64,000 nucleotides of DNA. Origin: Phallusia mammillata (taxonomy: Eukaryota). Below, piece by piece: positions 6,951-16,074 of this stretch. A program made the position numbers and the translations under genes. Where the stretch lies: contig OZ281496.1 in the NCBI GenBank assembly GCA_965637545.1, forward strand, positions 14,012,001-14,076,000. Reading direction: 5' to 3'. The stretch's first letter is position 1. Every line of letters starts with the position of its first letter. Below the pieces are notes generated by a model. That model did not search any database. It was not told the DNA's origin and was given only the letters and a program-made list of their open reading frames with translations.

Positions 6951-7621
6951 AAAAAACATACTTTTATCCACTTATATGTTATAGTTAGTAATAAACTACT
7001 TGTGTTTTTTTGCGGTATTATAATTTGAAGCATTACGTTCAATTAATTTTGGAGCCTTATTTGTATTGTTTTGTTTAATAGTAGTCCCTGCAATTAAAAT
7101 ATGTTGGTGGAGAGTGTAAAATTAGAACATGTCCGGGCACATTTGCGAACAATCCAATGCGGCACAGTTGTGTTTTGTATTTCTCCTTGTTTACCGACTG
7201 TTGTTGCTGTTTTTCGTTTGGTTGTTAAAGTTAATGATGTTCTTGTTCATGTTTACTCGTCACCTGTTCATGTGGTTTTCTCCTTTTATGGTTAATTTTT
7301 GTGGAAAATTTCAAGAAACCAAATTGCACATCTAAATCTATTTTCCAAAAGGATACATTACAGTCAGAACATACGAAAACACCCGTGTAAAATAAAATAG
7401 ACTATTGTGAAAATTGTACCTTTTCATTTAAATGATTACGTTAGGTTTGTAGGCTTATTGTGACGACGTTATTAACGACTAAGATAAAGTTGTTTGAATC
7501 TGTCAGTCAGTCAAATTTTATTTGCATAGTCACTTCATCATCATCACAGTTCCATTGTTGAACGGATACGTAAACAGCAAGGACACCGAAAAAAACGTAG
7601 TTTATCGAGTCAAGTGTCCTG

Positions 7622-7873
7622 TTATTTGAATTGTGGTTGAATTCCGTTGTGGGTATGTTCTGCCGTAGGATCGCAACCGACCGCACGAGCCTGGCGGGGT
7701 ACGTCCGGTTGCATAAGACGGTAGTTGAACCCGCAGATTCTGCTGGCCAAATGAAACCCGCCTAAACGGAAACACCAGCTCGGTTCCTCGGAACGTTTCC
7801 TGTGATCCTGTAGGCAGACCCGGGTGTCCCGAGGACAGTTCGTTGCGACGATGAGAATGTTGCCGTCGAGCAT
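7622..7873 (-). CDS. Hypothetical 83-aa ORF in the LINE 3' region
   Basis: GC-richer block 7560-7963, preceded on the minus strand by a strong acceptor T11-CAG (7977-7964). The first ATG downstream opens this ORF. No recognisable domain. Confidence 0.3.
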   Translation of the reverse strand: MLDGNILIVATNCPRDTRVCLQDHRKRSEEPSWCFRLGGFHLASRICGFNYRLMQPDVPRQARAVGCDPTAEHTHNGIQPQFK

Positions 7874-8612
7874 CTCCTCCTCTGCTTTTGTAAGATCGAT
7901 GACGAGATTTCAGATGTTGTTCGCTAGGAAGGTGCTGCACTGTCTTCGACCCGGATGGCTGATCTGAAAAAAAAAAACTAAATCCTACGGCAGTATTTTG
8001 TTCTTTTGTATGTGACTAAGTTAAGTTTTCCAGTTTAATGATATAATAGTATGGAATAAAAAAAAAAAAGTAAAATCACACTAAGATAAAACTGAAACAC
8101 ACACAAAAAAAAACACAAAAGGAAAAAAATAGTGAAAACTGGGGTAGTTATAACATAGAAGAACAAGCTCTATTATGTGTATTCTGGGGTGAGCGAGGAC
8201 CCGGAAGTGAATTAATTGTTGAGAGGTCGTATTTCCTTAATAAATGTAAGCGAAGCTGTTTTTTAAGAGGACAAGCGTGACAGAGACTTGATATCGTGTG
8301 GTAATTCTTGCCATACTTTTGGACCTCGATGACAAATTGATCTTGTGCCGAACGCGGTGTTTACGCGTGGATGAAAGTAGTTCTGGTTTTCAGCCCTTCT
8401 GGTGTTGTGATGGTGCAATGACGCAATAGGTGTGAACAGGGAGTTGTATGTGGAAGGTGTACCAGTACGAAACGCATGTAATAGTTTGGCTAACTAAAGT
8501 TTGTAAATGTCTTCAAATTTTAGAAGACGCAAGTCGTGATATAGTGGAGTAGCGCGACATCGGTAAGGGCTGCGAGTAATAGCTCGCAAAATTTTATTAT
8601 GTTTGATGTTAA

Positions 8613-9312
8613 TGTTACCGTAATTTTTGCGTTATGTTATCACCTTGTTTTACGTTAGCCACCACCGTTGTACTGTCTTGTACTGTCGGTTTATTAAGTT
8701 TGTTTTCTGTGTATGTGCTTATTTTCCTAAAACGGAAGTTATTACCTTAATTTCACGATGTGTTTTTCATGTTTTTTACTTAATCGCATTCACATCTGTT
8801 TGTTTAGTTCACGTTTATCTTTTAACTGTTCGATTGCTTCCCTGTGCATTGTTTTCATTTATACGGGAATTTAACCCACGGCACACCTTGTGTTCACTGC
8901 ACCTTGCTTTAACTCCTCCCCTGCCGTTGCCTTTCGCAGCATTCCGGCTACAATCCCAGGTGTACCTTCTAAAGTAAGCCGCTAGGGCGATGATAATTGA
9001 CCGGTGCGTTTCGACCACGTGACTTGTTGGTTTCCTTGCTTCTTTTACTAGTTTTGTTGCGATCCCTTTTTCGAGTGTTTTGCAGTCCTTTTGCGGGCCA
9101 CGTGTGGTTACAGGGGTTCTTCCCCGGCTGTCGTACTGTTAACTTGTGTTCGTTTTTGTGCAGCGCAGTGACTTGGCCAATATTGTAGAATTTTATATAG
9201 TGTTTTTAAATAAAGACAGCAGTGCTCGAACGCGTCTAAACTAGGGTTTTTCGTGACTAGCCGTTAGTGCAGTGTTCGAGGGCTTTTGGCAACCATTAAA
9301 TTGGGCGCCACA
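8613..9312 (+). repeat. 5' LTR (700 bp)
   Basis: Differs from 10819-11508 by an extra 10-bp tandem copy of TTGTACTGTC and 3 substitutions that I could see. Confidence 0.97.
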
Positions 9313-9386
9313 CAAAATTGGACACTGCAGTCACGCAGGCGCGTTCATATCACAGGGGAAGGGCTACGGTTTTTGTTGGTTTTATT

Positions 9387-10691
9387 ATGTCTTTTAATTT
9401 GAGTATGTCGCCTCCGTATTTTAAATGCGGTGACAATTTTAATACTTTTCTTATGCTTTTTAACTCATATTGCGCAAGTGTCAAGGCTACAGACGACGTC
9501 AAACGCCATTTGTTTTTAACCCACGTCGATAAAGACTATTTGTGGGACCTTAGCAGAGGAACAGGCGACGTGTACCAATTATCTTTTGAAGAACTTGTGA
9601 CAAAGGCAAAAGCCTGGGGAAACAGCCATGCGAATTTAGCAGCATTGCGTAATGAACTCCTAGATCGTGCACAAGGGCCTCAGGAAGGAGGGCGTGCGTT
9701 CGTTTATGCCTTGCAGTCACTTGGTGAGCGCGCATATTCCGCCGAGGTGGAAGCTGCGATTAAAAATGAGGTCTTGTTTTTGGCTTTGTTGCGCGGCCTT
9801 CGTGACCGCCAGCTTGCGGCCTCTTTAGGGCGTGAAATTGTTCAACGCGACTTTTGCACCGCAGCCAGCAGAGTTGCCGATATGGACGCCCGACCCCATA
9901 TCCTTCCAGTTACGACGCTTCAAGGCCCAACGGAAAGGCAAGAAGTAAAGGAGATGCTGTCCAAGATGGGCGAACACTTACAGCAGTCCGTCTGTATGCT
10001 TCGATGTGAACTTAACGAGGTACGGGCAGAAGTTGCAAGGATATGCTATCAAGATCATCGTCTGACGGCATATGACAGGCACCGTCCGGCCTTTCGTCCA
10101 GCGAGTAAGTCAGTGCGAAAATGCTTTATTTGTAACGCTGAAAGACATTTGGCGAGAAATTGCAAAGCGAATACACGTAGGCAGCAGCCGTCTATACATT
10201 TCGGGGACGCACCACAAGATTTCAGTAGAACCAGAGTGGTGAGGAACGTTCAGTGGAGTGGTCAGGAACGTTCAAAACACGGAGACTCTACACATCAACC
10301 GGGCGTTCGTGTAGATCGGCTCATTACCCCACAAAAGATGCGACATGATGCGATTTCGGCTCTACATAACCCACCTCACGGCGGTGGACACCTTGGAGTG
10401 GCCAAAACGCGTTCCAAAGTTGGCGATCGGCACTTTTGGCCAGTGTGGCCTGTGGAAGTTGAAGCCTACGTTCGGAGCTGTACAAAATGTGAAAGAAGTA
10501 AGAAGTTCAATGCTCGGCCCAGGGCGCCTTCAGGCGAACTAAAGCCGATGGAACGCTTGGAAATTGATATCCTGGAACCTTTACCTCTGTCGGTGGCTGA
10601 CAGTACACGGTGTCCCCGATATATAAATGTTGCGACCCGTCCCGAAACGAGGCCCCAACATTACAGCGGCAGCCACGAGACGAAGGCGTAA
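9387..10691 (+). CDS. Gag (CCHC knuckle) fused in frame to the integrase N-terminal HHCC domain; protease, RT and RNase H absent
   Basis: Open 434 codons from ATG 9387. Contains CFICNAERHLARNC, then LHNPPHGGGHLGVAKT...FWP...VRSCTKC, then the start of the core (MERLEIDILEPLP). No DSG protease or YxDD motif. Confidence 0.88.
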   Translation: MSFNLSMSPPYFKCGDNFNTFLMLFNSYCASVKATDDVKRHLFLTHVDKDYLWDLSRGTGDVYQLSFEELVTKAKAWGNSHANLAALRNELLDRAQGPQEGGRAFVYALQSLGERAYSAEVEAAIKNEVLFLALLRGLRDRQLAASLGREIVQRDFCTAASRVADMDARPHILPVTTLQGPTERQEVKEMLSKMGEHLQQSVCMLRCELNEVRAEVARICYQDHRLTAYDRHRPAFRPASKSVRKCFICNAERHLARNCKANTRRQQPSIHFGDAPQDFSRTRVVRNVQWSGQERSKHGDSTHQPGVRVDRLITPQKMRHDAISALHNPPHGGGHLGVAKTRSKVGDRHFWPVWPVEVEAYVRSCTKCERSKKFNARPRAPSGELKPMERLEIDILEPLPLSVADSTRCPRYINVATRPETRPQHYSGSHETKA

Positions 10692-10818
10692 ATCTCCCTC
10701 TCGAAGGTAGAAACTTTGATGTATCGCTAACCGCCTTAGGGTAAATCGGCGGCGACCGAAGTACTTTGCAGATCTGTAACGGGTTGCACAGGAGTGCAAC
10801 GAGATAGGGTGGGGGGTG

Positions 10819-11508
10819 TGTTACCGTAATTTTTGCGTTATGTTATCACCTTGTTTCACGTTAGCCACCACCGTTGTACTGTCGGTTTATTGAGTTTGTT
10901 TTCTGTGTATGTGCTTATTTTCCTAAAACGGAAGTTATTACCTTAATTTCACGATGTGTTTTTCATGTTTTTCACTTAATCGCATTCACATCTGTTTGTT
11001 TAGTTCACGTTTATCTTTTAACTGTTCGATTGCTTCCCTGTGCATTGTTTTCATTTATACGGGAATTTAACCCACGGCACACCTTGTGTTCACTGCACCT
11101 TGCTTTAACTCCTCCCCTGCCGTTGCCTTTCGCAGCATTCCGGCTACAATCCCAGGTGTACCTTCTAAAGTAAGCCGCTAGGGCGATGATAATTGACCGG
11201 TGCGTTTCGACCACGTGACTTGTTGGTTTCCTTGCTTCTTTTACTAGTTTTGTTGCGATCCCTTTTTCGAGTGTTTTGCAGTCCTTTTGCGGGCCACGTG
11301 TGGTTACAGGGGTTCTTCCCCGGCTGTCGTACTGTTAACTTGTGTTCGTTTTTGTGCAGCGCAGTGACTTGGCCAATATTGTAGAATTTTATATAGTGTT
11401 TTTAAATAAAGACAGCAGTGCTCGAACGCGTCTAAACTAGGGTTTTTCGTGACTAGCCGTTAGTGCAGTGTTCGAGGGCTTTTGGCAACCATTAAATTGG
11501 GCGCCACA
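10819..11508 (+). repeat. 3' LTR (690 bp)
   Basis: Near-identical copy of the 5' LTR, directly after the PPT. Confidence 0.97.
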
Positions 11509-11805
11509 TTAAGCGTTTTAATTGATGCAGCGTATCCGCTACCCCACGCCGCGACGGCATATTGCAGATAGGGGTACGCAAAAGAGTAGTAGATAATACG
11601 GAGAAACTGTTGTCCAAAGTAGTCACGCAGCTTGACTACGTAGTCGTACAAACGTTGATACATATTTTTTTTAAATACCTTAGCAAAAGGGGATAGCAAT
11701 GAAATTGGTCTGTAGTTAGTGCATTCAACTCGTGAGCATGATTTATGAATTGGTATTACTTCCGCAATTTTAAGTTCAGTGGGGTATTCTCCATGTTGTA
11801 TAGGC

Positions 11806-12703
11806 CAGTGCTCTTCAACCGGGTATACTGTATACCCAAGTGTATACCACATTAAAACTAGGGTATACGACTGAAGAAAGGTATACGAAGGGAATACAGC
11901 TGAGGTCAGTGTTACTAAACATCGCTATTTTTATGAAATGCAGGAAGACATAGCATGCTGGTGACCTATGTGAGACTGACCTGCTTGCTGTAAATATTAT
12001 TACGTCAGGTTGGGATTGTTGCGTCAATAATGTGAATTATGAAGCAAATAAGCACATCCCTGGAGTCTGTTAAGGTTGAACAATGTACTTTCTGAAATTT
12101 TAGTTTTAAAGGCCCTGGAGTAAAGGATTGCGAATACAAAAAATTGAGAACAAGTCAACACCACACCACATGTCCACATCGCTGAAAGAATGCAGCAACA
12201 AGCCAGCCATTAAATCAACTACTTAGGTTTACACACTTTTGTATGCTAAATTTCCTAGACGTAGCACAGGGGGTGCACAACCTTTCCGCTGTGACGGCCG
12301 CATCGTAAATCCTTATTAATAGTGCCTGATGGCCAATTTAATTTCTAGCTTGTTACGTAGAACAGTCTAGGGATCAGACTTTACTGTTTATAACGTCACC
12401 ATCTAAATTGTGACGCTAACGATGCCTGTTTTCGCATTGTTTACCCATAGTATGCTTATAAAAAGTCTCAAACATGCGGCTTCTTGGCTTCTGGGCCAAA
12501 TATTTCAGTTTACATGTTCACGGCCACAGGTTGTCTACTCCTGGCCTTTTGTATGACAATAATTCACGCGACCAGGCAAGTAGCCTACCTATTGGTAGAC
12601 TGTTACTTTCTATGCACAATTATAAATTGCTATGTGTAGGGTATACAAAGTTGCTTAAAAATTGTAAAAGGTATACAACGGGAAAAAAGGTTGAAGAGCA
12701 CTG
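11806..12703. mobile_element. Non-autonomous hAT element inserted in the LINE ORF2
   Basis: 15-bp perfect TIR CAGTGCTCTTCAACC; perfect 8-bp TSD GTATAGGC. The LINE frame resumes across it (FNWCSLY-QHGEYPTELK). Confidence 0.95.
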
Positions 12704-14821
12704 GTATAGGCTACACCAGTTGAAAGTCTCCGAGAGCATAGGTGAAATAATGCTTTTAACCATTTTGATGTATTTAATAGGAATTTCATAACTGGGCACA
12801 GATTTTTGACTATCAAGAGTGGATATATACATTTCCACCTCATCAGGGGTAGTGCCATAGAAGAAGAAGGATGATGGCTTTATGATGGAGGAACTATCAG
12901 GTGGTGGCATAACTGGCTGTGGAATGGATGATGCCATATTTGCTCCTATTTTGGCAAAGAACTGATTGAAATTGCTAGCAATTGAAACTGGGTCTTTAGT
13001 GCATTGTGATATTCCATCTAGTTTGAGTTCTACAGGAGCTTTGAGTAAAGTTTGTTTTCGTGACAACAAACTATTAATAATTTTCCACATTCCACCAATA
13101 TCATTTCTGTGATTTGTTAGTTCTTTTTCAATGTATTTATGTTTAGCTTCTCGCAAAATGTGGTTTAACTTATTACGATACTGTTTATATTGATTATGTT
13201 TACTTGTACTTGAAAACCCTGATCTACATAAAGCATGATACATTTTATTTTTTACTTTGATTTATAAATACTTTTGCTTATCCAAGGTTTCTTGGCCAAT
13301 TTTCTTCTTCTACTCACTGTGGTCAGTGGTGCATGGTGTTGCAGTATTTTGTTAAATACATGGTTAAATGAAGAAAATTGATGTAATATAGTTTCAGATA
13401 ACAGTGGTATTTTCATAACAGCATCTTTTATATCAGAAATAAAATCTTCACTAAAAAACTGGGTCTCATTTCTTCTCAGGAATTTTTCTGTTTTATCACA
13501 GCAAGTTAAATGCAATAACACAAAAGTTGGCAGGTGGTCAGAAATGTCTGCAGTCAGTATTCCTGATTTGCAGGTAATATTTACATTGTTGGTGTAAAAA
13601 TGGTCAATAAGAGTTTGGCTGTGGTTTGTTAAACGTGTGGGTTGACATATTAAGGGTGATAGACCATAAATTTGCATAGAATCTAAAAAAATTTGAATGC
13701 TTTTAACTTCCTTGTATTGCATGAGATCTATGTTAAAGTCACCACACATATATACAGGATGGTTGGTATCACTGAGTTTATGCAATACTGATGATAGTGC
13801 ATCCTGGAACACTTCAAATGAATGTTTGGGATGTCTGTATATTACTCACAATATTACATTTTTTTGTTTCAGTTTAAATTGCAACCAAAGACTTTCAGTA
13901 TCTGGAGCAGTAAATTTAATATCAGATCTTATGCTATATAAAATGTGTGATTTTATATATACTCCTACTCCTCCTGCACTATGTGAAGTATCGATATGAT
14001 GGAAATTATATCCCATTAAATCAGTAGCAGTGATTATGCCATTCAGGCTTATTCTAGTCTCAGATATCATAACAATATCAGGGGATCTGATAAGCAGGTT
14101 TGTTTTTTCTCAAACTTTGAATGTTTGTGTGCAATATATACATACCTTTGTTGCTAAGTTTCTTTAGGGCATGGTTCAAGGATGCACAATCATAGTAACC
14201 TGAATGGGTGTGATCAATGCAGGCTGGTAAACAGGGTGAAAATGGTGATTTTACTGGTGAAATAGCATTTACTAGCTCTGAGTTACTGACATTGCTGAAT
14301 GGTAAATAGGACAAAAGGCATCGGGTACAAAAGTAAGGGGTGTTATTGTGAAGATTACTTGCACATTTGTTGCAATTCATGTGGAAGAAAAGTGGTAAAA
14401 GTTTGTGGGTTTAAATACTACAAGTATTAACAAATCTTATGCCTCACCAAGTCTTTGTCACTGTGGATGGGAATGATGTTGCTGTTGTCATCCTTCTTCA
14501 GAAAAGTCTCTCCGTTCAGTCCAGATGTGATCTCAGCCTCGTTGTTTACCAGCTAAGTCTGCACCTTATCATATTGTTCCTGCAAGAAAGTTTGGCTCTT
14601 GCGGATCTCCCTGAGCTCATTGATTAGTTCTTTTAGGGTTGAGTCGGTGGAGATTTTACTCTCCCGAACCTCATCCCTCAGGGATTCTATCCTTTCAAGA
14701 ACCACAGATTGGTCATCTTTCTTTTTCCTCAATTGAGACATTTTTCCAATAATCCTCAAGTTTTCACGAAATTTCACAGCAAATCAGATTTTGTATATTT
14801 AAATAATGTTACCTAAGCAAC

Positions 14822-14837
14822 CTTATTCAAATAGAAT
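14822..14837 (-). other. Exact 16-nt ascidian (Ciona-type) spliced-leader sequence ATTCTATTTGAATAAG
   Basis: Plus strand 14822-14837 reads CTTATTCAAATAGAAT. Its reverse complement matches the Ciona intestinalis SL exon, as recalled from the literature, at 16/16. It is in sense orientation at the LINE 5' boundary. Confidence 0.85.
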
Positions 14838-16074
14838 CTTTTCAGGCACATAATCAATCTCAATTCTTATCAAGTGTTAAAACAACAGCATTCCTGTGCC
14901 CGCCAAGTCGTCATGGTTGTACTGCCCTGTGCTATAGTTTGTGTCAAATAGGGTCTGTCGAAAAACATTAAGGTGTGACACGCTACACAGAATATACTAT
15001 AAAATATATGCTAAGTTAACGAATGTATTCTTTAGCAAGAACTTTCTGCAACGTGCAGTGAGGTTTAGGTAGTAAACGAACGTGTTGTCAAACAGCACAC
15101 CTGACGTGTTGTCTACGCCTGCAGTTTCACGACACACCTGGTAGGTTGTTTGAACACGCGTGTTGTCTAGAGTTACACAGCACAATACGCCAAACACAGT
15201 GTTGTTTTCATTGCATAGTGCAAAACGGAACAGTGCATAATAAATAGGAAAGAAAAGTTTGAACAAACAAAAAGAAACGAACACTGAATATAAAAAACAT
15301 TTGCCACACAGTGAATTTTTGCACATTAGTTTTAAGTATTTGAAAAAAAAAATTAATTAAAATTTAAAGCTAATCTACCATAAAAGGTTTCAACCCGAAG
15401 TACCTTTTGCCTGCCATCTTCATTGAGAACAATGTATGGATACTTAGGCATGTTTCTAGGTTGGTCCTTTCAAGAAAATAGCCAATATTACAACATGTTT
15501 AAACAAACATACAAATTGTAATAACTTTTTTGCTGTAAGTATCACAAAATTTTAGGGTGGGGGGAGGGGGCGTGAGCCAAAAGGTAAATAACCAAATTTA
15601 TTTAACTTTGGACTCACCTCCCCCTACAATTTTGCAACTGTAGTGTATTGTTTGCGAGCATTGTTCACGTTTTCAAAAAAGGAACGAATATTATGATGCG
15701 ATACCTTATGGCGTAACACAAACTTTAAATAATGACATACAAGGCAAAGTTTTTGGTTTGTTAGTTTAGAACAAGGTTCACCAAATTGGATTAAATACGT
15801 GAAGCATGGTCCAAAGCGTTTATCACCGGGTCTTTGTTATCAATCACTTTGGCCCTTTTCTGCTGACTCATTTACTCATGAAGAGAATGAAAATGTCAGC
15901 CCTTGCGTCACCAGTGCGGATTGTTACCGTTTCTTCTTTCACGTATATGTAAGATTTACGCACCTTTATTAGCATGGTAGAGCTACTAACACCGTAACGC
16001 AAATGACAACGAAAAGTTAATAGGTTATATCTCCAAAAATACTGACGGTTAGGTCTATTAGGGTCGGTGTAAGG

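Follow-up and report, generated by a model that had tools for sequence, protein, structure and literature searches.

A LINE in the genome of the ascidian Phallusia mammillata begins with the spliced leader (SL) of its host, and this leader is the 5' end of the insert and belongs to the insert, not to the target. Recurrent SL trans-splicing, by which the element would not need a promoter of its own, is the best explanation for this 5' end and probably the correct one. The copy described here lies in a window of 64,000 nucleotides (assembly GCA_965637545.1, contig OZ281496.1, positions 14,012,001 to 14,076,000), and positions are those of this whole stretch. The window LINE is a dead copy, interrupted by nested insertions, as summarized in Table 1.

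Table 1. Parts of the leader-headed LINE and of the elements nested in it, from the 5' to the 3' end of the LINE
Feature	Positions	Strand	Evidence and remarks
SL 16-mer, opening bases of the LINE insert	14822-14837	-	Single exact match in the window; same sequence as the Ciona SL and as the exon in the 553-bp SL RNA gene repeat; missing from the empty sites
5'UTR, 80 nt, AT-rich, starting GTTGCTTAGGTAAC	14742-14821	-	No upstream ATG; first ~26 nt conserved across subfamilies
ORF1 remnant, coiled coil	14440-14741	-	In-frame TAG at 14555-14553
N-terminal segment of ORF2 with a Cys-rich start and an AP-endonuclease domain, broken frames	12716-14380	-	ORF list; Exo_endo_phos weak in the window copy, clear (4.6e-11) in the intact copy
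Nested MITE-like insertion, ~0.9 kb, interrupting ORF2	11794-12715		27-nt terminal inverted repeats 11794-11820 / 12689-12715
ORF2 RT start (NYRPISLL motif) fused directly to a late ORF2 segment	11498-11793	-	RT core deleted; read from the sequence; RVT_1 9.6e-34 in the intact copy
Nested element, ~2.9 kb, bounded by direct terminal repeats of ~0.7 kb; ORF of 457 aa at 9318-10691	8613-11497	+	Direct repeats 8613-8977 / 10819-11173
C-terminal segment of ORF2, then a 3'UTR of ~0.75 kb; includes a GC-rich stretch	7514-8612	-	Aligns with the intact C1 copy at its 3' end, 74% over 1.1 kb
(TGAC)3 microsatellite tail, LINE 3' end	7502-7513	-	Read from the sequence
AGATTC, 3' copy of a possible target-site duplication	7496-7501	-	5' copy 14839-14834 overlaps SL nt 1-4; empty sites have a single AGATTC

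The leader and the insertion site

The 16-mer ATTCTATTTGAATAAG is the exact ascidian SL, as known from Ciona (PMC1488885 Table 1; PMC7986045), and an exact search of the window finds it once, in sense orientation and, as a preliminary description had reported, 80 nt 5' of the ORF1 ATG at 14741, with no ATG upstream. That the leader is the host's own was borne out in this species by its SL RNA genes, which form a tandem array of 553-bp period with a GT donor, a hairpin and a U-run and have the same 16-mer as their exon, and by RNA contigs in which the template-switch oligo is joined directly to the SL. The intron of these genes is GTAAGCATCATACTCC, unlike the Ciona-type SL RNA gene pattern SL+GT..AGCTTTGG, which has no match in the genome. 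The exact SL occurs 3860 times genome-wide, while the reversed pattern, used as a control, does not occur; about 3,000 SL+GT matches sit in the gene array, 681 SL matches lack a following GT, and the dispersed matches number roughly 700-800. One RNA contig has the SL attached at an AG of the genome (window 12779-80), a place at which the DNA itself lacks the SL. Among the contigs of four RNA runs, small in size, no sense contig over the LINE 5'UTR or ORF1 was found.

The claim that the insert truly starts with the leader was upheld by empty sites. Two paralogous loci match the predicted empty-site sequence without a mismatch, and the homology extends ~200 nt to either side; both sites lack the SL and have only the ATTC of the leader and one AGATTC. 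Because the empty site holds only these four bases of the leader, the duplication at the window LINE is 2 bp (AG) if the ATTC came from the RNA and 6 bp (AGATTC) if it came from the target. The AGATTC repeats proposed earlier as a target-site duplication with 5' microhomology are present, and their length as a duplication depends on the assignment of the ATTC. The G directly before the SL in the window copy is derived from the target, not from a cap. The intact copy on C1, inspected for a target-site duplication, has no clear one.

A family headed by the leader

The family is an APE-type, two-ORF non-LTR retrotransposon (LINE), CR1/Jockey-like. It has the LINE hallmarks of ORF1 before ORF2, 5'-truncated copies (L043, L068-70), a short-repeat 3' end and empty-site proof of insertion. 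An intact element is 4.7 kb long and consists of the SL, a UTR of 54-80 nt, ORF1, ORF2, a 3'UTR of ~0.7 kb and a (TGAC)n or (TTGAC)n tail, which is (TTGAC)3 in subfamily B as against (TGAC)3 in the window LINE. An intact ORF1 homologue (L008:1571-2344) has 258 aa, with a coiled coil and a Baculo_FP_2nd domain (PF25298, 1e-09). Intact ORF2 has Pfam matches to Exo_endo_phos (4.6e-11) and then RVT_1 (9.6e-34), of which the window copy keeps remnants only; the Pfam search of the intact copy found the N-terminal AP endonuclease and no restriction-enzyme-like endonuclease C-terminal to the RT. The label "CR1-group" for the family is based here on motifs in the C-terminal part of ORF2 and on the microsatellite tail. 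The closest database relatives are at most 44% identical, and the SL is absent from the relatives L073, L075, L076 and L077. Copies L068-70, which have an open ORF2, were considered as full-length copies and rejected, as was L116, given that their predicted 5' ends are truncated or misplaced.

The 5' junctions of the family were surveyed with the 5'UTR, without the SL, as the query, and L033/34/37/39 were treated as one insertion, duplicated along with >900 bp of its flank. All 15 independent full-length copies are headed by the SL, shortened on its 5' side in some, and the flanks all differ; the SL is exact in nine junctions, has one or two changes in three and is 5'-shortened in three. A different SL in the species, full-length copies without the 16-mer, or the 16-mer already at the empty site had been named as grounds to abandon the preliminary description, and none of these was found. 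Some copies have a defective genomic SL, such as those at C6:22905635, where 8 nt are left, C3:16657529, with 10 nt, C3:13156521, with the change T13A, and C3:26645284, with two changes, and no defect common to a sub-lineage was seen. Subfamilies that diverge by 16-24% further downstream do not vary at the SL|GTTGC junction or in the ~26 nt after it, and every SL-LINE junction observed begins with GT. In the junction comparison the SL is no more conserved than the 26 nt that follow, and therefore an argument from "refreshing" of the leader has no statistical force.

The association extends to other assemblies. In ERZ25067582 the exact SL heads three copies that share an identical ORF1 but each have a different flank, and ERZ21736675 has one LINE copy with a shortened SL. 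The ~26 nt after the SL can be recognised in a LINE of another assembly at 38% ORF2 identity, and the SL is identical to that of the host across deep LINE divergence. The start of the window 5'UTR resembles the post-SL start of a related LINE from another assembly (L074) and does not resemble the SL RNA intron.

Origin of the leader

The most economical origin for an SL-headed LINE is the one proposed in the preliminary description, reverse transcription of a capped, SL-bearing LINE RNA. The base before the SL is G in 26 of 49 (53%) dispersed SL sites with unique flanks, compared to a background of ~13% G at positions -2 to -7 (p = 2e-11 vs position -1), and in 8 of 13 copies of this LINE family. 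This excess of G at position -1 fits reverse transcription through the cap. An untemplated G before nucleotide 1 of full-length human L1 insertions and processed pseudogenes has been attributed to cap copying. The likeness is the extra 5' G on full-length retrocopies; the difference is that here the G stands before the SL and identifies the SL as the end of the template RNA that was capped.

Repeated trans-splicing is favoured by two tandem "relic" SL copies. L045/46 read SL + GAA + 13-nt SL + LINE, and L050 has, in this order, the SL, 12-13 nt that used to be flank, the SL and the LINE. Tandem SLs give 27 matches across the genome, and a different assembly has another (L124). The two relic copies show that read-through transcripts of SL-bearing copies were trans-spliced anew and then retrotransposed. 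In both, the acceptor is an upstream AG and not the AG that ends the genomic SL. AAG is a weak splice acceptor. The traits of SL-tagged retroposition, with the host SL at the 5' end of the copy, its absence before insertion and relic or tandem leaders, are thus all present. Many unrelated element types and host retrocopies in this genome also carry the SL, and we infer that other retroelements and retrocopies, many of them, use the same route. Repeats of the form SL+CTGATGA...GAAA were considered as candidate hammerheads but not confirmed, as Rfam gave no match to them or to the SL gene unit, either at the gathering threshold or at E<=1.

The proposed cycle would begin with a Pol II transcript that contains the LINE and is SL trans-spliced just 5' of GTTGC, such that it gains the SL and a cap. 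The SL-headed RNA would be translated, and TPRT would then copy it to its extreme 5' end, such that the new DNA copy includes the SL. A transcript that enters this copy from the flank could be trans-spliced again, with no trace if the AG ending the genomic SL is used and with a relic SL if an upstream AG is used. The LINE 5' end would thus be restored again and again, and no promoter within the element would be required.

A different history, which we consider rather unlikely, is that the SL was acquired once or a few times and then inherited, with an internal promoter in the SL and the ~26 nt that starts transcription at SL nucleotide 1, and with selection, for instance for translation or RNP assembly, keeping the SL. 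Given that the 26 nt after the SL are conserved like the SL itself, such a promoter is possible, and short internal promoters are known in Jockey/I-type LINEs. The strong conservation of SL|GT and ~26 nt between the diverged subfamilies, its survival at 38% ORF2 identity and the GT at all junctions are what inheritance would lead one to expect, and the cap-G signature is expected under it as well. The relic copies, however, require read-through transcription and a new trans-splice even then, and inheritance is also opposed by the many unrelated SL-bearing elements and retrocopies, by the lack of a common SL defect in any sub-lineage and by the identity of the SL to that of the host across deep divergence.

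Targeting of SL genes, or capture of an SL-gene promoter by master copies, is very improbable. The SL followed by GT does mimic the exon-donor junction of the SL RNA gene, and SL gene units are in fact broken, always at the same position in the intron, by a different element of ~4.1-4.6 kb. But, in line with the preliminary description, which had discounted such targeting, the flanks of all 15 copies are unrelated to the sequence upstream of SL genes and the empty site is not SL-gene sequence; a search for SL-gene flank + SL + GTTGC with at most one mismatch gave no matches, such that no LINE copy abuts an SL-gene promoter. The endonuclease is of the AP type rather than restriction-like, and after the GT the sequence that follows the SL does not resemble the SL intron. 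Scarcely credible, and slightly less likely than targeting, is a switch of the RT from the 5' end of the LINE RNA to SL RNA or an SL-bearing mRNA, as in U6-L1 chimeras. SL RNA is itself retroposed, as dispersed SL+GTAAGCATA pseudogenes (L079, L094), and the GT that follows the SL in both the LINE and the intron could act as microhomology. A jump to SL RNA, however, would bring the intron along, and the trait of snRNA-LINE chimeras, a whole small RNA with its 3' part, is absent, with only the 16-nt exon present and GTAAGCATCATACTCC missing beyond the GT; nor would a sporadic jump predict a junction that is identical in all copies and subfamilies. A chance 16-mer beside the LINE, already thought unlikely in the preliminary description, has a negligible probability and nothing beyond the AT-rich region to recommend it, against one match in the window where 0.05 are expected at up to two mismatches, the empty reversed control and the recurrence in 15 junctions and other assemblies.

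Recurrent trans-splicing can be taken one step further, to a reading that we regard as possible but short of probable: a long-lived, promoter-less LINE lineage of chordates in which the genomic SL is a self-renewing trans-splice acceptor. The sequence of the genomic SL contains a run of pyrimidines and ends in AG, with no other AG inside it. Any Pol II read-through would then give rise to LINE mRNA that is capped, headed by the SL and precise at its 5' end, the LINE behaving like a downstream cistron of an operon. If true, this would be a new answer to the problem of the LINE 5' end and promoter and would explain why the SL matches that of the host across LINE families and ascidian species.

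Significance and relation to known systems

LINEs lose their 5' ends at insertion and must bring or find a promoter, and the solution used by CR1-type elements is poorly understood. In this trans-splicing chordate, the retrotransposition intermediate would be a capped, SL-headed RNA, and the arrangement is stable across subfamilies and genomes. Should re-splicing renew the SL, the element would be using host trans-splicing as its expression system; the copies with a defective genomic SL provide a natural test of re-splicing. The SL allows full-length retrocopies in ascidian genomes to be marked exactly, with the G at -1 as a footprint of the cap. Caution is warranted for SL-based annotation and SL-primed libraries in tunicates, which will collect transposon RNAs and genome-encoded SLs.

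The SLACS, CZAR and CRE elements of trypanosomatids and NeSL-1 of C. elegans are LINEs that reside in SL genes and have a restriction-like endonuclease, and SLACS RNA starts with SL bases. PMC4640811 refers to such elements. They resemble the present family as LINEs physically tied to SL sequence, but differ in that here the endonuclease is of the AP type and the insertions are dispersed, with unrelated flanks and no copy in an SL gene.

Dinoflagellate retrogenes carry relic DinoSL in the DNA (PMC5585692, PMC6050394, PMC12014239). The likeness is a leader fixed at the 5' end of retroposed sequence, with tandem relics that mark repeated cycles. Those are retrocopies of host genes in protists, with relics cut at an AG inside the DinoSL, whereas this is an autonomous LINE in a chordate, whose SL has no internal AG and therefore leaves no relic on precise replacement.

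About 30% of Hydra TE Iso-Seq reads carry the SL (PMC12220107), and in Schistosoma mansoni suspected SL-containing retrotransposons led to the proposal of "trans-spliced retro-transcribed elements" (PMC5832876). In both, TE RNAs use host trans-splicing, as proposed here. The evidence from Hydra is at the RNA level only, and the Schistosoma cases are few and possibly assembly artefacts, whereas here the SL is the constitutive DNA end of a whole family; the empty sites, the cap signature and the replication across assemblies go beyond both.

Finally, R2 and L1Tc, the latter with Pr77, are LINEs freed from host co-transcripts by a 5' HDV-like ribozyme (PMC3185411, PMC4035085). As a conceptual parallel to the mechanism proposed here, they can rely on read-through and make their own exact 5' end by RNA processing. 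Their 5'-OH end is uncapped, whereas trans-splicing, in an element with no ribozyme, would supply a capped leader.

The spliced leader and the window copy

On the minus strand, the 5' junction of the LINE reads ...cctgaaaag, then ATTCTATTTGAATAAG, then gttgcttaggtaac..., in which the central 16-mer is the Ciona spliced leader (SL; PMC1488885 Table 1; PMC7986045). The preliminary description had placed a leader here, and it is indeed present; with up to two mismatches allowed, the window has no other match (0.05 expected). It is followed by 80 AT-rich bases that contain no ATG, and then by the ORF1 start codon. The 3' end is (TGAC)3, and AGATTC is found at both ends of the element. The copy is dead, as ORF1 is broken by an in-frame TAG, the ORF2 frames are disrupted and the RT core has been lost by deletion. 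The LINE also hosts two younger insertions, the longer of which includes a 457-aa plus-strand ORF.

Features with coordinates (bare positions refer to the window)
Feature	Location	Remarks
SL	14837-14822 (-)	16-mer
ORF1 ATG	14741	
ORF1 in-frame TAG	14555	
(TGAC)3 tail	7513-7502	
AGATTC	14839-14834; 7501-7496	both ends of LINE
MITE-like element, ~0.9 kb	11794-12715	nested in window LINE; 27-nt inverted ends
Terminal-repeat element, ~2.9 kb	8613-11497	nested in window LINE; ~0.7-kb direct terminal repeats
Antisense SL transcript over ORF2	12781-13364 (+)	acceptor AG beside nested MITE
Empty target sites	C3:13,186,061 (-); C3:15,592,578 (+)	
Apparently intact sister-subfamily copy	C1:2,615,372-2,620,062	4.70 kb
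SL gene array	C3:11,108,338 onward	L078, L117-L119
SL exon + intron start	C1:12,449,884 (L079); C2:7,309,965 (L094)	
Decayed array, SL-gene-like units	C1:31.416 Mb (L054)	array ~130 bp
Tandem-SL repeat family	C1:1.15-2.18 Mb; C3:1.818-1.820 Mb	L004-L006, L111, L112; conserved upstream sequence
SL+CTGATGA...GAAA repeats		L002, L007, L009-L016, L025, L027, L090, L091, L096-L102; also L072:1223

The 16-mer is the genuine cap-adjacent leader of P. mammillata mRNAs. The 240-Mb genome, in which the window spans C3:14,012,001-14,076,000, contains 3860 exact matches, 3179 followed by GT and 681 not, and none to the reversed 16-mer used as a control. Most of the SL+GT matches (~3,000) lie in a tandem array of 553-bp period on the same chromosome as the window, and dispersed SLs total roughly 700-800. 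The array unit, SL followed by GTAAGCATCATACTCCTCGGAGTAACTTTTTTCC, comprises an exon, GT donor, hairpin and U-run, the layout that an SL RNA gene should have. RNA contigs from the same organism terminate in a reverse-complemented SMART template-switch-oligo tail that immediately precedes the SL (loose end CCCGTACTCTG). In a 473-nt contig, the SL is found on the plus strand exactly 219 nt ahead of window position 13000, and the inferred acceptor, ttaatAG before G (12779-80), lies in genomic DNA without the SL. Taken together, the gene array, the contig ends and the SL-free acceptor identify the 16-mer as the host leader, and the species' sequence, assumed previously, is thereby confirmed. Longer antisense RNA contigs (1.5-1.7 kb) reach below position 13000. 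Dispersed SL+GTAAGCATA... sequences (L079, L094), in which the exon runs on into the intron start, resemble retropseudogenes derived from SL RNA that had not been spliced.

The leader across the LINE family

A genome query of the 5'UTR and ORF1 start without the SL (window 14560-14821, minus strand) matched 23 copies, and the SL, whole or partial, lies directly upstream in all those that extend to UTR nt 1. Merging of duplicates (L031/L032; L045/L046; L033/34/37/39, with >900 bp of flank in common) left 15 independent junctions with unrelated flanks: nine with an exact SL, three with 1-2 changes and three 5'-shortened to 8, 10 or 13 nt. The shared 5' end to be sought in other copies is therefore found. 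The family has ~46 copies, several with an open ORF2. In the apparently intact copy, the SL and a 54-nt UTR precede ORF1 (258 aa; coiled coil and Baculo_FP_2nd) and ORF2 (1046 aa; Exo_endo_phos and RVT_1), followed by a 3'UTR of ~0.68 kb and the tail (TTGAC)3.

The predicted empty site, ATGTGCCTGAAAAGATTCAAACAACTTTATC, occurs with 0 mismatches at two C3 loci, neither with the leader. Both resemble the insert flanks over 200 nt upstream (~95%) and downstream (~91%), and the two alignments overlap by AG. Since these loci contain only ATTC of the leader, the target lacked the SL. Given that ATTC is common to SL and target, the duplication is AG if the RNA supplied ATTC, and AGATTC if there was microhomology or truncation over 4 nt. 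After insertion, the filled locus underwent a duplication of its own (L032, 99% identical, 1.08 Mb distant). Copies of the window subfamily (>=88% aa identity) lie nearly all within C3:11.4-17.7 Mb, a 6-Mb stretch that adjoins the SL gene array and contains segmental duplicates of filled and empty sites; it may be TE-rich and duplication-prone, and is possibly pericentromeric.

A G at -1 marks the SL as the end at which the template RNAs were capped. On full-length L1 insertions, an extra G before nt 1 is the recognized trace left when the cap is reverse-transcribed. Among 49 dispersed, uniquely flanked SL sites, taken from the unselected first 30 matches, the LINE family and 37 SL+GT sites, G is present at -1 in 26 (53%), against 10-20% at -2 to -7 (mean 13%; binomial p 2e-11). 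For the LINE family alone, it is present in 8/13. SL RNA genes have C at -1, so the G is not derived from the gene. The window copy is an exception, as its -1 G pre-exists in the empty site.

Other repeats also begin with the leader. At least four further LINE-like families are headed by SL+GT (L003, L113/114; L110, L115; L080, L103; L030), with post-SL starts GTATTGAATAGG, GTTTGTTAGGC, GTGATAAGG and GTTGATG... In a large dispersed set, the motif CTGATGA...GAAA begins no more than a few bases after the SL, with some copies head to head; Rfam gave no match to these at the gathering threshold or E<=1, so a hammerhead ribozyme there is unconfirmed.

Source of the leader

That the LINE RNA carried the SL and was reverse-transcribed in full, the core of the preliminary description, is well supported. 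Recurrent trans-splicing probably supplies the SL. Two independent copies have a second leader, with the structures SL-GAA-CTATTTGAATAAG-LINE (L045/46) and SL with its final G altered or missing, ~12 nt of what had been flank, SL, LINE (L050). Such double leaders are the expected outcome if a transcript begun upstream of an SL-bearing copy receives a leader at an AG lying upstream and goes on to be retrotransposed. A further partial SL relic is found in another assembly (L124). Tandem-SL matches number 27 genome-wide, and an LTR-like family (L004-6, L111/112) has 3-4 SL relics in succession, for example SL-TCTATTTGAATCAG-C-SL-GTCTATTTGCATAAG, with leaders full or relic, which suggests that trans-splicing and retroposition followed one another several times. 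Recurrent trans-splicing is also favored by the many unrelated element types that carry the SL and by the RNA antisense to the window LINE, which is likewise SL trans-spliced.

The SL might instead have been acquired once and now be transcribed from an internal promoter, a possible but distinctly less probable history. Against renewal, or neutral to it, the SL is no more conserved than the following 26 nt, this stretch is recognizable in a LINE of another assembly with 38% ORF2 identity (GTTGATGTAGGGATAAAATTTAATA vs GTTGCTTAGGTAACATTATTTAAATA), and GT opens every SL-LINE junction. No sense LINE RNA was found among RNA contigs of the same organism. Recurrent trans-splicing is preferred when the double leaders, tandem SLs and antisense SL RNA are weighed against the 26-nt conservation and lack of sense RNA. 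A promoter-less LINE with a self-renewing acceptor is plausible, and this model is now open to direct test.

A 5' end made as a chimera with SL RNA is not favored, as GT alone is common to the LINE and the SL intron. Targeting of SL genes had already been judged no explanation, and this holds, also for capture of their promoter: no LINE flank resembles the SL-gene upstream region, a genome search for SL-gene flank + SL + GTTGC gave 0 matches, and the LINE encodes an AP-type endonuclease. Some SL gene units do contain an insertion at a constant position, after intron nt 8 (GTAAGCAT), but it is another, GC-rich element (~4.1-4.6 kb, starting with ccggcacgatgaccggttgcc) that looks specific to SL genes; the interrupted units have the SL variant ATTCTATTTGCATAAG. 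A chance 16-mer beside the LINE is excluded by the match counts in window and genome.

Relatives and known systems

Even its closest relatives in the database match ORF2 at no more than 44% identity. In ENA ERZ25067582, three copies with identical ORF1 on three contigs with differing flanks all start with an exact SL (3/3), with the ATG 78 nt downstream, and one LINE copy in ERZ21736675 retains a 10-nt SL remnant. The SL is absent from four other relatives (L073, L075, L076, L077).

SL relics are well described in dinoflagellate retrogenes (PMC5585692, PMC6050394), ~30% of Hydra TE Iso-Seq reads have an SL (PMC12220107), and "trans-spliced retro-transcribed elements" were cautiously proposed in Schistosoma (PMC5832876). 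Our literature search found no autonomous LINE family, chordate or other, described with a host SL as its constitutive DNA terminus. SLACS, CRE and NeSL elements are located inside SL genes, whereas the LINE family of the window has flanks unrelated to SL genes and an AP-type endonuclease.
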